60,672 bases of DNA. It comes from Macrostomum lignano (lineage: Eukaryota). Below the pieces are notes generated by a model that had not been told where the DNA came from, did no database searches, and saw only the letters and a program-made list of their open reading frames with translations. Shown piece after piece: positions 26,201-32,200 of the stretch. The stretch spans positions 1 through 60,672 of the forward strand of contig NIVC01001266.1 of assembly GCA_002269645.1 (NCBI GenBank), given 5' to 3'. Every line of letters starts with the position of its first letter. Within the stretch, counting starts at the first letter, position 1. A program made the position numbers and the translations under genes.

Positions 26201-29200
26201 GAGTAACTAGCATCCAGAGAGAGTAACTAGCATCCAGAGAGAGTAACTAGCATCAAGAGAGAGTAACTAGCATCTAGAGAGAGTAACTAGCATCTAGAGA
26301 GAGAGTAACTAGCATCCAGAGAGAGTAACTAGCATCCGGAGAGAGTAACTAGCATCCAGAGAGAGAGTAACTAGCATCCAGAGAGAGTAACTAGCATCCG
26401 GAGAGAGTAACTAGCATCCAGAGAGAGAGTAACTAGCATCCAGAGAGAGTAACTAGCATCCAGAGAGAGTAACTAGCATCTAGAGAGAGTAACTAGCATC
26501 TAGAGAGAGAGTAACTAGCATCCAGAGAGAGTAACTAGCATCCGGAGAGAGTAACTAGCATCCAGAGAGAGAGTAACTAGCATCCAGAGAGAGTAACTAG
26601 CATCCAGAGAAAGTAACTAGCATCCAGAGAGAGTAACTAGCATCCGGAGAGAGTAACTAGCATCCGGAGAGAGTAACTAGCATCCAGAGAGAGTAACTAG
26701 CATCCAGAGAGAGTAACTAGCATCTAGAGAGAGTAACTAGCATCCAGAGAGAGTAGATAGCATCCGGAGAGAGTAACAGCAGACCAGGTAACTAACTAGA
26801 GTCCATAGCAGGGTGCCAACCGATCCCAACAAGAAATTCGCATCTCGGCGTTGGCAGTGCATCGGCCAGGTCCCACTCTCTCAGTCCAGCGTCGTCACAC
26901 CGACGCCGGGGCGCCGCGGCGGCAGCCGTGAAGCACCAGCTGCAGCCGCAGCATCGAACGCCCGAAGAGCGAGCTCAGCTGCGCCAGTGGATGGAGCAGC
27001 GTCGCAAGGAGCAGCTGGGGCAGTACCGCAAGCAGAAGCAAGAGCGAAGAGAGGCTGAGGCGAGGCCCTATCAGGGTGGCGCCGGCGGCGGCGGGGCAGC
27101 ACCCACCGTCTCCGACTGGAAAGCTGCCGAAGCCGAGCGTCAGCGACGCCGGGAGCAGCTACGCGCTGAACGCGAACAACGCGAAGAGGCTCACCTCCGC
27201 CGCCTGATGCAGGAGGACCTGTCCGGCGCGGCCTCCTCTGGCGGACTTCGCGACTCGCACGAGGCCATCCGACCGCGCCTCGAGCCGCAGAAGTCGGCCA
27301 TCCAGCTGATGGAGGAGGAGCTGGCCATGGAGCAGCGCCGGATGGCCGCAGCAGCTAAGGCCGCTTCGAATTCGTCGAGAAGGAACGCCAAAGACGAATC
27401 CGGTCGTCAAGTCGACTCGGGCTTCGGTCTGAGAGGCGAATTCCAGACTGACGCAGAGTACGAGGACTACCTGAACCGGATGGTGGAGCTGTCGTCTGCC
27501 GCAGCCTCCGAGGCGATGCTGCAGCAGGCTAGCAGTAACAGGCCGACACCGCGGGAACCGGACTCAGGGGACGAGCTGGTGCCCTACCAGCCGCCGCCGC
27601 AGAAGCCTCTCACCCAGGTAGTTCGAATGCAGCGGCCCGAGTTGACGCGTAAGGGACCGTCGAGGCGACCGGATCCGCAGGCGCAGAGACGGCTGCACGA
27701 GCAGATGCGCCAGACACCAGTGATGATCACGAAACGGCAGGGTGAGTGACCTGTGCTCCGTCCTCTGTGTCGCTTCTCATCCCTGATGCTTCTCATCTCT
27801 GATGCTTCTCACCCCTGACGCTTCTCATCCCTGACGCTTCTCATCCCTGACGCTTCTCATCCCTGATGCTTCTCATCCCTGATGCTTCTCATCTCTGATG
27901 CTTCTCACCCCTGACGCTTCTCATCCCTGACGCTTCTCATCCCTGACGCTTCTCATCCCTGATGCTTCTCATCCCTGATGCTTCTTATCTCTCATGCTTC
28001 TCATCTCTGATGCTTCTCATCCCTGACGCTTCTCAACTCTCATGCTTCTCATCCCTGATGCTTCTCATCCCTGATGCTTCTCATCTCTCATGCTTCTCAT
28101 GTCTCATGCTTCTCATCCCTGATGCTTCTCATCCCTGATGCTTCTGATCCTTCATTCTTCTCATGTCTCATGCTTCTCATCCCTGACGCTTCTCACCCCT
28201 GATGCTTCTCATCCCTGATGCTTCTGATCCTTCATGCTTCTCATGTCTCATGCTTCTCATCCCTGATGCTTCTCATCCCTGATGCTTCTCATCCCTGATG
28301 CTTCTCATCCTTTATGCTTCTCATGTCTCATACCCCTAAAACTTTACGTGCTTCCTGAGATTTTCACTAGTTTGACATGAGCAGATCCTAGTACAATTTG
28401 TAATTATAATTGAATTTTAATCGCTCCTAAACAGAAAAATTAAACAATAATTAGTGTCGTTTTACTAAAATATTTTAAGTAGAAAAGCGTTTAATGGATT
28501 TTTTATCAGCAGTTGTAAGAAAATGACATTAAGTTGAGTGTGGCTGTTAAAATACAAGCAAAACATCATATCCGTATTTGTTGATTGATGATGGACTCAG
28601 TGATGAAACAGACTTGCCGATCGCTTCACTCCGATAGTGGCCGCTTTGGCCTCCTTAGTGTTGGCGCACGTGATCAGCAGTTCGCTGCGATAATTTCGCA
28701 TCCCGATAGCCTGATAAATCAGAGCTTTCAGCGCCACGTCCTGGTTGAAGAAGTCCATTTCGATTGGTTTCTGAGGCTGCTCCAGGTACCTGTGGCACAC
28801 CTTCAGTAGCAGCTCCCTGCCCATGTCGAGGACGTTGAGCGGCGGCGGCAGCGAGGAGTTGCTGGCGTAGGAGGCGATGAAGAAGAACCGTTCGAACTGC
28901 CACAGAGCCGTGCTGTTACAGTCGATCTCTTCAATTGTTTTGGAGAACAGGGCGACAATGAGGCTGAGCAGTAGTATAGTTGTGATGGTGACGTACAGCG
29001 GCAGCAGTATGTAGGGTACAATAAAGGTTGACTGAGGATTGGGACAAGGCAGAGTGTTGTTGGTCCTGGCTGTGTACACCTCTTCGCAGTTTTCGCCGTT
29101 CACCGTGTCCAGATGGTACTCGCCGAACACGCTGAAGAAGCAGAATTGCACGAGTCGCTTGGCCATGCTGATTAGGCTCATCCTGTTGGGATTGTAGGCG

Positions 29201-32200
29201 TAGTAACCGTTCGGATAGAGCAGGCTGCACATGAGTATGCCGAATCCCAATAGAAATATTATCAAGATGAATAGAAACGGCAAGAGATCTTTGATGATCA
29301 TTTTGTAGATCATCTTTAGTTTGGGTCCAAAGTACTGATGCACCCTAGATGTGTTCAAAAGCTTCACCCACAATAGCAGGCAGTAAGTGCCTAGAAATGC
29401 CCTGGTACAATACCACAGGCGGTTGTCGAACAAGCCTAGCATAGTCTGGTCCAAACTGTAGGGCTCGTACTCCAGAACCACAAGCCGCAGGACGAAACCA
29501 GTCAGAAAGATGAGGCTAGTCACAAAGTCGAAAATGTTCCACTTGTTTCTCACATAGTCCAACAGTTTCTGGCGCCAGATGGACTGGACGAACTTTTTTG
29601 CCTCTTCAACAACAAAGCCAAACGCCGTGATGTAGACAAATACCTCAAGCGCCGTGATGCTGGCGTTGAGTTGAAACTGCACCACATAGGACAGGGTGCA
29701 CAGCAGCACCAGGTGGCTGATGGTGAAGTAGCGAAACTTCACGGCCGGAATCTGATAGAAATAATAGTACAGGGTGCAGCATTCGGAAACTTTTGCGGCC
29801 ATAGTGCCGCCGTGCAGCCGCGGATCCGGCGGCTGGAATTCCAAAGCGTCTGAGAACATTGTACTCGTCGCGTCTCTGGTGTCGTCGTCCTCGATCATGA
29901 AGCTGGTTCGACGATTCCTTGACGAGCCGCCGCCGCCGCCGCCGCCACTTCCAGAGCCTTCGGTTTGATCTGCTGACTGAACAGCATCGAGACTTAGTCG
30001 ACGCTCCTGTTCAGCGTGGGCCAATCGCCGATAATCCCGATAGAGTGCGATAGACACCAGTGGGTTGAGCGGAATGCAGCCCAAGGCTATAATGATCTCG
30101 CGATAAATTGGATTCACGTCCAGCAGAAATCTGTACCAGGCAACGTCCATGGCTTTTTGGCACGTGTCCAATCGTAGGAACGTGTCGCAGCCGCAGTTGG
30201 CAGCCAGGTGAAGGCAGTTCAGGTTGTCGAACGCTGGCAGAATCTGTAGCAGATATTGGTACGTAGTCTTCTTGTGCTCGCTGACGTCAACCATGCACAT
30301 TCGTTCAACCACTTTGCAGGCGAATATCTCGCATTGATCTGCTAGCACAGCGATCGATGGCAGCTCCAGCGTGTCAACGTTGAGAACTTTGTGCAGATTT
30401 CTCAACAATCCGGCCGCCATCAGGCAGACTGGCACAGCTTCGAATTGCACCTGACTTAAGAATTCTAGCGTCAGGTTCATCTTGCCGGTCAGTATGGACC
30501 AGATTGGCAGCGTGTCAATCGGATTCGTCACCTCCAGGCAGTGAGCGACATTCACCCGGCTCAGCTGGTACATGCCAAGGACGTCGCCAACTTTCTTTAC
30601 CAAAGCTGTTCTGCGCAAAGCGGCCCGCTTGCCACCGGCGCTGTACTCAATAAACTGCTCCGCAAACAGCTTGCTAATGATGCTGGCATCCTTGTTGGTC
30701 TTGCTATACAGCGTGGCGATGTGTTCTTCAAGAAATTGGCTCACGTGTCGCCAAATCACTCCGCAGTGCATTACGTCTTGCAGCATGGAAACGTCCTCTC
30801 TGAACAGAATGTACTTTGTAGTGAAGATGGCGATCGTGTCAATGATCTCGCGGTTGTCAGTGCAGTCGTGTATGGCGCCAGTTTTGAGTGCCGCCATCAT
30901 CTTGGACTGAAAGTCCATAACGTCCTGCGTGTTCTCCTCGTCAACGTCTAGAAGATCGTTGACCAGCTTCAGCTCGGTCTCGCGTTTCTGCTCCAAGTCT
31001 TCCTCTCTGGCCCTGTAGTAGCATTTGCACGCCTCCGAGTCGATCAGCTTCAGAACGTTCAGGAATTGACGAAAGTGCTTACTGCGGTAGAGATCCGTCA
31101 TCTTGTACGCCCGGACATCTTTAGACACTTTTTCAGTGAAGTACACGATGAGCTCTTTGAGTGCGCCTCGGTTCTTTGTTACCATCATCGAATCGATGGC
31201 TGTCATGCCGTTCTCCGTCTCACGATCGATGGTGGCGCCCCGTTCTAGCAGCATCTTCATCAGCTGGATGTTCTGATTCTCCACGGCGATGTGCAACGCT
31301 GTCCGACCGAACGCGTCCTGCTGGTTGATCAAATCCGGTGCAGCTTTAAGGACGATCTCGGCGTGCTCTCTCAGATCATTGATACAGGCTCGGTGCAGGG
31401 GCGTGTGCCTCTGGCTGTCCAAGCAGCCCGGATCGGCCTGGTGGTATAACAACAGATCCAACAAGGTCGTGGCGCTATCCGAGCAAGCTTTGTGCATAAG
31501 AAAATCGCCGTTGGGCATCGGAATATTCGGATCGGCGCCGCGCTCCAACAGATAGGCAACAGTGGCCGGCACCTCCGGACTGGTGAGGGCGTAGTGAATT
31601 GGCAGCTGGCCAGCAGCGTTCTTGGCATTGATCTGGCCGCCATGGTCCAGCACCAGCTGCAGCATTGGCGTGCTGCCCAAAGCGGCCGCCAGATCGCTTA
31701 ACCGCATGGCATCTTTCACCGGCCTATCAACGTTGGCTGGGGAAAACAGACCGGAGAGAGCCGCCATGTCTTTCTCCTCCGCGGCGCGTTGCATTCTCAG
31801 CAGCAGTTCGGCCTCTTTTCGCTCCTTGGCTTGAAGAGCTGCTAGCGCCGCTTTATCGTTAGCCCCAGACGGAGCGTTGAGCTGCTGCTGAGCAGCGAAT
31901 AGAGAGTGACGCGGTAGGCGCGTCTTGATGTAGCCAAAGAATCCGCTAATCTCTTCCGTCAGCTCGTGCACCGGGAACAGTTCGCGGAATGTAGTTGACT
32001 CCATGTTGTTAAACCAGTCTATCAACTGTCTTTGGCGCATGCAGTTCTTCTCACATCGAAACGATGGCGACTCAAACACCTGGGTCTTTCTTCTACGGTT
32101 AACTCTGCGCGCCTTCTTCTATATATTTCTACTGTACAGAGAAGCTGTAACCAGGCCCGCCTCGCTGTGCATTGTCCTCGCGAGGGTTGCAGGCAAAATT

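Follow-up and report, generated by a model that had tools for sequence, protein, structure and literature searches.

A single-exon ankyrin-bearing TRPM-like channel gene of the free-living flatworm Macrostomum lignano is a probable member of the TRPM_MCLZ clade

A complete channel gene in the window

The Macrostomum lignano contig NIVC01001266.1 (assembly GCA_002269645.1; 60,672 nucleotides), the whole of which is called here the window, carries on its minus strand a gene for a transient receptor potential (TRP) channel that resembles TRPM proteins but bears ankyrin repeats. Its open reading frame (ORF) covers 28597..32079, corresponding to 1160 amino acids when counted from an upstream GTG. 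From the first ATG at 32040, it runs uninterrupted for 1147 codons plus stop, giving a complete single-exon coding sequence (CDS) at 28597..32040, and the NCBI annotation of the contig places a single-exon gene at exactly these positions. A second genomic copy, located on contig NIVC01001778.1 (L002 10001-13444), encodes an identical protein. When both copies were compared, 5 of the 3444 CDS positions differed, all of them synonymously, whereas the immediate flanks (2.3 kb) presented 112 mismatches in 2337 bases (~4.8%) plus 12 gaps. Since only synonymous changes accumulated in the CDS while the flanks diverged, the window gene is either under purifying constraint or recently homogenised; it is also intact. 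Even at silent CDS sites, divergence between the two copies was around 30-fold lower than in the flanks, which suggests that gene conversion has acted alongside selection.

Domain organisation and predicted structure

An AlphaFold2 (AF2) model of the window protein was built on a 59-sequence family alignment, with a mean predicted local distance difference test (pLDDT) score of 81.7 and a predicted TM-score (pTM) of 0.81. The N-terminal region (31750..32040, minus strand, as are all the parts that follow) was predicted to be disordered over residues 1-62 (pLDDT below 50 for 10-63) and then helical over residues 63-97, with helices at 63-88 and 92-97. This helical stretch (31750-31854) includes a confident, charged 26-residue helix that precedes the ankyrin repeats; as pure speculation, it could stand in for the absent C-terminal pole helix, which helps TRPMs assemble. 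Six ankyrin repeats followed at residues 105-308 (31117..31728; Pfam Ank_2, E=2.8e-30; six AF2 helix pairs), where canonical TRPMs have SLOG/MHR1-2. A helical MHR3/4-like linker, recognised by Pfam and by PDB sequence and fold matches, occupied residues 314-693 (29962..31101). It contained a match to the PF25508 'TRPM2-like domain' at residues 503-621 (30178-30534) that scored 26.9 bits, just below the 27-bit cutoff, which six M. lignano paralogs exceeded (28.3-45.8 bits). A disordered, Gly-rich and acidic loop (residues 696-735, 29836..29955, pLDDT below 50) connected the linker to the pre-S1 helix.

The membrane part began with this pre-S1 helix and a voltage-sensor-like S1-S4 domain (residues 747-898, 29347..29802), which were delimited by AF2 helices and by alignment to P0203, a Heterobilharzia protein described below. 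At the positions that form the ligand pocket of TRPM_MCLZ, a drug-activated schistosome channel also described below, the window protein carried F772, H776, F808, E812, K815, N835, F837, D838, K893 and N896. The AF2 model and the alignment placed the S4-S5 linker, S5, pore helix, selectivity filter and S6 at 28948..29331, with the filter sequence FGEY at residues 972-975 (29116-29127), and the TRP helix at residues 1036-1060 (28861..28935), with the sequence WQFER as its TRP box at residues 1047-1051 (28888-28902). Pfam Ion_trans matched residues 772-1040. In the tail (28603..28851), the same two sources showed an LPPPLN motif after the TRP helix (28834-28851), a short helix and, at residues 1100-1146, a pair of C-terminal helices (1100-1114 and 1118-1146) that could make a rib-like helix.

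Several domains typical of TRPMs were sought in the window protein. For SLOG, neither LSDAT_euk nor LSDAT_prok of Pfam matched at E<=1, a jackhmmer SLOG profile that matched 85 of the collected sequences did not match this protein, and its modelled N-terminus was all-helical ankyrin with no alpha/beta domain. Pfam and iterative profiles built from flatworm TRPMs found no NUDT9H or kinase domain. The AF2 model showed no C-terminal pole or coiled-coil helix, and only 87 residues remained past the TRP helix.

The channel core and linker are of the TRPM type

The non-ankyrin part of the protein was searched as a two-sequence profile. Against the PDB, its best match was Nematostella TRPM2 (6co7; E=2.5e-43, 151 bits), in an alignment that spanned from residue ~506 of the linker through the TRP helix, and TRPM3 reached ~1e-31. 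All 60 PDB matches listed were TRPM proteins (E from 2.5e-43 to 3e-18), so that any non-TRPM structure scores below 68 bits. In a Foldseek comparison of the whole AF2 model, 49 of the 50 best PDB matches were TRPMs. The single one that was not, NOMPC (5vkq), appeared at rank 6 with the lowest TM-score (0.27), and its alignment length was due to the repeats. When the linker was modelled separately (residues 290-745, pLDDT 82.0), the 50 best fold matches were TRPMs without exception, with 240-400 aligned columns, marginal E values (~1e-3) and TM-scores of 0.3-0.44.

Regarding the features that define each TRP family, the window protein has the MHR3/4 region and the S1-S6, pore and TRP helix of TRPMs, and it lacks their MHR1/2 (SLOG) domain and the full C-terminal set of rib and pole helices. 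It is unlike TRPN, TRPC and TRPA in its TRPM-like transmembrane (TM) core, unlike TRPN in having six repeats and unlike TRPC in its TRP box, WQFERF. To this box the TRPM sequence WKFQRY is the closest, the TRPC box being EWKFAR. TRPS proteins are SLOG-linked, often Nudix-linked and ankyrin-free, and the window protein is none of these. Sequence and model thus support a TRPM-type core and linker, and an affiliation with TRPN, TRPC or TRPA is unsupported.

These results agree on every point with the structural reading of the first-pass annotation, which had been made from the DNA letters and their translations. The ankyrin repeats that it had put at ~31710-31180 correspond to the six repeats found by Pfam and AF2 at 31117-31728. 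The TRPM-like MHR3/4, pre-S1, S1-S6, FGEY and WQFER elements were all located by Pfam, AF2 or PDB matches, and the short C-tail devoid of coiled coil, NUDT9H and kinase was confirmed at 87 residues. Its preference for a TRPM-type over a TRPA, TRPC or TRPN core was upheld by the sequence (60/60), whole-model (49/50) and linker (50/50) matches. Of the checks that it had proposed, the comparison of an AlphaFold model with TRPM structures gave overwhelmingly TRPM folds, and the domain scan returned Pfam Ank_2, Ion_trans and a borderline PF25508 with no SLOG.

Relatives of the window protein and expansion in Macrostomum

When the non-ankyrin part was used in a word-indexed protein search, just three proteins came up, all from M. 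lignano. The family became visible only when 1.84 billion cluster representatives were searched exhaustively (HMMER) with the non-ankyrin profile, which yielded 1511 matches. Their top tier (260-620 bits, with linker and TM region aligned) consisted of M. lignano proteins throughout, all with ankyrin repeats, PF25508 and Ion_trans and no SLOG. The second tier contained proteins from Opisthorchis, Dicrocoelium and Schistocephalus, also with ankyrin and without SLOG. A follow-up search added proteins of this kind from Fasciola, Heterobilharzia, Paragonimus, Calicophoron, Mesocestoides, Anoplocephala, Hymenolepis and Echinostoma. Several of the trematode and cestode proteins were labelled 'TRPM7' by their sources.

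In M. lignano, the family comprised at least 11 diverged paralog lineages (below 92% TM-region identity), that of the window protein included. The nearest paralog, P0003, was 50% identical overall and paired with the window protein with 100% bootstrap. The matches of each parasite species fell in one 50%-identity cluster, which points to apparently far fewer copies than in M. lignano. We found no description of this Macrostomum expansion in the open literature searched.

The collected sequences also contained a second ankyrin-bearing TRPM architecture of flatworms, ANK-SLOG-MHR3/4-TM-NUDT9H. Specifically, P0026 (Clonorchis), P0217 (S. mekongi) and P0029 and P0176 (M. lignano) presented around three ankyrin repeats before SLOG and a C-terminal NUDT9H. 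In addition, the gene models P0168/P0008 (Opisthorchis viverrini) and P0164/P0165 (M. lignano) comprised a tandem pair of complete channel units, in one case with an integrase domain; tandem duplicates have probably been merged here into single models.

Membership in the TRPM_MCLZ clade

An ankyrin-bearing, SLOG-less clade of TRPM-like channels has been known in parasitic flatworms since 2023. Its founding member, Schistosoma mansoni Smp_333650 or TRPM_MCLZ, is activated by meclonazepam and starts with an extended N-terminus made up of ankyrin-like repeats; its gene has three exons, and the channel was formerly considered TRPM7-like (Park et al., PMC10788528). According to Sprague et al. (PMC11731825), the channel 'lacks the NH2-terminal MHR1/2 or SLOG domain', the place of which is taken by ankyrin-repeat modules. 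In 2026, 63 orthologs were catalogued in trematodes, monogeneans and cestodes and described as 'TRPM-like', clustering next to other TRPMs (PMC12861061). The planarians Schmidtea and Dendrocoelum have full-length Smp_333650 homologs (supplementary BLAST table, PMC12058154). The literature treats TRPM_MCLZ as a single ortholog per species, and no Macrostomum members of the clade are mentioned in PMC10788528, PMC11731825 or PMC12861061.

A TRPM_MCLZ ortholog in our sequence set was identified indirectly, through the published pocket residues (PMC10788528, PMC12861061). Heterobilharzia P0203 (CAH8492191.1, 1382 aa) carried L826, H827, H831, Y864, E868, I892, D893, R943, Y1117, R1120 and T1121, each shifted by the same +4 in its numbering, and its position 946 was Y, as in S. 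japonicum-type orthologs. Neighbour-joining, unrooted trees were then computed from two MAFFT alignments (281 TM columns of 130 sequences; 464 linker and TM columns of 93 sequences) with two distance measures. All the ankyrin-bearing sequences without SLOG were split from every sequence bearing SLOG or NUDT9H, with bootstrap values of 100/100 for 464 columns and 84-92/100 for 281 columns. Within this split, the M. lignano family was monophyletic (100%), and a separate clade, also at 100%, united the TRPM_MCLZ orthologs of trematodes and cestodes. Because the M. lignano genes make up a clade of their own beside these orthologs, they are co-orthologs of TRPM_MCLZ and not 1:1 orthologs.

The window protein therefore has the two characters of the clade, namely N-terminal ankyrin without SLOG and a grouping with Smp_333650 orthologs in unrooted, distance-based trees. 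It departs from strict TRPM_MCLZ orthology in that it keeps H831 and Y1117 but replaces R943 by K, a substitution shared with its sister P0003, whereas R943 is retained in the remaining nine lineages of M. lignano. On sequence grounds, we consider it likely, with a probability of about 0.8, that the window gene encodes a cation channel of the flatworm TRPM_MCLZ 'TRPM-like' clade, lying within a Macrostomum-specific co-orthologous expansion.

Several observations weigh against this assignment. The TM identity of the M. lignano family to TRPM_MCLZ orthologs was 31%, against 30-34% to canonical flatworm TRPMs. With a TRPM_MCLZ profile, the window protein obtained 193 bits and was outscored by several flatworm TRPMs that bear SLOG (206-230 bits); with this same profile, seven of the 11 M. 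lignano lineages ranked above all canonical TRPMs. The 215-residue segment that follows the ankyrin repeats showed no significant profile-profile similarity between M. lignano and TRPM_MCLZ (hhalign E=0.12). R943, reported to be invariant across the 63 catalogued TRPM_MCLZ orthologs, is replaced by K in the window protein, which also has N in place of H946. Finally, the trees that support the clade are all neighbour-joining and unrooted.

The first-pass annotation had considered the gene a candidate for an undescribed TRP subfamily. This proposal does not hold, as the architecture has been published (PMC10788528, PMC11731825, PMC12861061) and the window protein falls in that clade, an outcome that the annotation itself had named as refuting. 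Both clade and architecture were already known; what is new is a free-living relative and its Macrostomum expansion, with no new TRP family. The suggested relevance to praziquantel is indirect, the praziquantel target TRPM_PZQ being a different paralog that bears SLOG and NUDT9H.

Introns and genomic surroundings

Five M. lignano paralog genes were checked for introns. Three of them (the window gene, P0003 and P0011) were single-exon, whereas the other two had small introns, amounting to ~823 nt in the P0004 gene and ~106 nt in the P0007 gene. A poly(A) remnant was sought 3′ of the stop codon of the window gene and none was found, only a 16-bp satellite that begins ~270 bp past the stop. The TRPM_MCLZ-type family is intron-poor, with three of five M. 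lignano genes single-exon and three exons in S. mansoni, so retroposition is not needed to explain the window gene, nor is it shown. Regarding the claim that this was an intronless CDS, hinting at retroposition, in an intron-rich locus, the NCBI single exon bears out the first element, while the lack of a poly(A) remnant and the intron-poor family leave retroposition unsupported. The intron-rich locus was only partly borne out, by a repeat-filled intron in the upstream neighbour and a large opposite-strand gene model that encloses the TRP gene.

The upstream neighbour, at 32600-34403 on the minus strand, is a fatty-acid hydroxylase gene (PF04116); a tandem repeat with a 42-bp unit fills its intron (~32780-33610). 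In the UniRef model P0002, this hydroxylase is fused to the TRP channel by splicing a donor at ~32672 to an acceptor at ~32121. We rejected the fusion as a true N-terminal extension, since the window hydroxylase ends at its own stop at ~32600; P0002 looks like a read-through or operon-type chimera rather than a true fusion. Satellite-like tandem arrays lie on either side of the TRP gene (27772-28324, 25205-26781, 24000-24704 and 35486-35847), the array types being 16 bp in 35 copies, 20 bp in 80, 61 bp in 11 and 36 bp in 9. On the plus strand, NCBI annotates a gene at <18597-36079 (3240 aa, no Pfam match) that spans both the TRP and hydroxylase genes. The large ORFs of this opposite-strand gene (17490-18857, 21115-22578 and 26928-27749) are Gln-rich and of low complexity, with one weak Joubert-domain match. 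Further away, of the ORFs at 56502-57173 and 48266-49006 (both on the minus strand), one gave a strong AIG1-family GTPase match (E=3.4e-30) and another weak EF-hand matches.

Discussion

The findings presented here place the window gene most probably in the TRPM_MCLZ clade, and different origins for its unusual architecture have to be weighed. One is that a SLOG-less TRPM core acquired its ankyrin block independently in the Macrostomum lineage, the likeness to TRPM_MCLZ being convergent. The undetectable similarity of the post-ankyrin segment between both groups (hhalign E=0.12), a TM identity to TRPM_MCLZ no higher than to canonical TRPMs and the ambiguous profile score of the window paralog would fit such independent shuffling, as would the flatworm TRPMs with ankyrin before SLOG, which indicate that ankyrin blocks are mobile. 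However, the ankyrin-bearing SLOG-less sequences formed a single split with 84-100% bootstrap under two distances and two alignments, and the parts follow the same order with similar spacing in both groups (ankyrin block, ~215-250 residues, PF25508-type region). The one weak motif occupies matching relative positions in the two (114-139 versus 114-138), and the full-length planarian homologs of Smp_333650 indicate that the clade spans the phylum (PMC12058154). We thus regard separate fusion as improbable.

Somewhat less improbable, though still unlikely, is that the clade represents an ancient TRP family, sister to TRPM plus TRPS or older still, in which ancestral ankyrin repeats persisted and SLOG was never gained. 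Himmel et al. infer that ankyrin was lost before the TRPM-TRPS split (PMC7306681), TRPM_MCLZ has been placed 'next to' other TRPMs and not among them (PMC12861061), and our unrooted neighbour-joining trees separate the clade from all SLOG-bearing sequences at 100%. Against such antiquity, all the named ankyrin-bearing SLOG-less members are Platyhelminthes, no member from another phylum appeared among the best 150 of the 1511 exhaustive-search matches, SLOG is present in every abalone TRPM and TRPS protein (PMC12980990), and the top-scoring non-members are canonical flatworm TRPMs, as would fit an origin inside flatworm TRPMs. Because the named members are all flatworm and the abalone TRPM and TRPS proteins all SLOG-bearing, the sequences favour a derived flatworm TRPM in which SLOG was swapped for ankyrin over an older lineage. 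A more far-reaching scenario, in which the clade would have branched before the TRPM/TRPS ancestor gained SLOG and survived only in Platyhelminthes, with the uniquely large Macrostomum repertoire of 11 or more lineages as a sensory receptor family, is equally doubtful; if true, it would mean that the ankyrin-bearing pre-melastatin channel, inferred by Himmel et al. to have been lost, is still represented today.

It is very improbable that the protein belongs to a classical ankyrin family (TRPN, TRPC, TRPA or TRPV) and has a merely TRPM-like look. NOMPC does appear in the sequence matches and in the fold list (5vkq, rank 6), and the succession of ankyrin repeats, helical linker and TM region is common to TRPC and TRPN. 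Nevertheless, non-TRPM structures stay below 68 bits when compared with the 151 bits of Nematostella TRPM2, the 60 PDB matches listed for the non-ankyrin part being all TRPM, and the NOMPC fold match had the lowest TM-score (0.27) and a length due to its repeats. Moreover, the linker alone retrieved only TRPMs (50/50), PF25508 occurs across the family, there are six repeats compared to 29 in TRPN, and WQFERF is unlike the EWKFAR of TRPC. Just as little credit can be given to a retrocopy, pseudogene or assembly or annotation artefact without function. What favours it is an intronless CDS flanked by satellite-like arrays, located inside a large opposite-strand model and joined to the hydroxylase gene in the chimeric P0002. 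Opposed to this are the intact 1147-codon frame, two copies differing only synonymously while their flanks differ by ~5%, the lack of a poly(A) remnant, ten other paralog lineages of the same architecture, some with introns, and a structure prediction that was confident across the whole protein. Membership of the TRPM_MCLZ clade through a Macrostomum-specific expansion remains our preferred reading.

With respect to function, S. mansoni TRPM_MCLZ expressed in HEK293 cells produced an inward current and a cytosolic Ca2+ rise (PMC10788528), and the Fasciola and Echinococcus orthologs are insensitive to meclonazepam (PMC12861061). Judging from the schistosome channel and the solved TRPM structures, four subunits would form the pore, a ligand or Ca2+ in the S1-S4/TRP-helix cavity would open the S6 gate, and the filter glutamate would let divalent cations pass. 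The ankyrin stack and the linker, if arranged as in these relatives, would build a cytoplasmic ring and an input or partner-binding surface. By analogy, we expect the window protein to be a tetrameric Ca2+-permeable cation channel that is gated via the S1-S4/TRP cavity and responds to other ligands than its schistosome relative. The ankyrin block might serve partner binding, or mechanical or thermal input, and the expansion in a free-living worm suggests that sensory inputs may have diversified.

In schistosomes, only two anthelmintic TRP targets have been deorphanised, and TRPM_MCLZ is one of them. Channels of its type are present, and much expanded, in M. lignano, a free-living and laboratory-tractable worm (transgenesis, RNA interference), which means that the design is older than parasitism. 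M. lignano could therefore provide a non-parasitic model for what these channels sense and for the job of the ankyrin module, and its paralogs offer natural variation at drug-pocket positions 827, 864, 943, 946 and 1120 that can be read against published mutagenesis.

When compared with TRPM_MCLZ (Smp_333650), the window protein shares the replacement of SLOG/MHR1-2 by ankyrin, the subsequent helical linker, TRPM-type S1-S6, TRP helix and LPPPLN motif, the lack of NUDT9H and kinase, an intron-poor gene and the same tree group. In the pocket, both have H831 (H776 here, in S1), E868 (E812, in S2), D893 (D838, in S3) and Y1117 (Y1058); the S3 Asn (N835) and the filter Glu are conserved too, and the pockets differ at seven positions (H827F, Y864F, I892F, R943K, H946N, R1120N and T1121S). 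The filter reads FGEY in the window protein and F-EV in neodermatan TRPM_MCLZ proteins. With 87 residues past the TRP helix, its C-terminus is much shorter than those of the neodermatan proteins, which measure 1160-1440 aa in total length, and the copy number contrasts as well, with at least 11 lineages in M. lignano and apparently far fewer in parasites.

With canonical TRPMs (Nematostella TRPM2 6co7, TRPM3, TRPM7 and TRPM4), the window protein has in common the MHR3/4-like linker, pre-S1, pore helix and TRP helix, as well as an S1-S4 cavity in which the Glu of S2 and the Asn/Asp of S3 that belong to the TRPM Ca2+ site are present. It also has the FGE-type filter of TRPM1/3/6/7, where the filter Glu goes with divalent permeation. 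Unlike canonical TRPMs, it lacks SLOG/MHR1-2, the pole helix, NUDT9H and kinase, it has six true ankyrin repeats, and the S2 Gln of their Ca2+ site is a Lys. The order of ankyrin repeats, helical linker, pre-S1, six TM helices and TRP helix is shared with TRPN (NOMPC) and TRPC, from which the window protein differs in its TRPM-type TM region and linker, its six repeats instead of the 29 of TRPN and the absence of an EWKFAR TRP box. Like TRPS (ced-11-like, soromelastatin), it belongs to a divergent TRPM-related lineage; TRPS proteins carry SLOG, often Nudix, and no ankyrin (PMC7306681), whereas the window protein presents the reverse combination.

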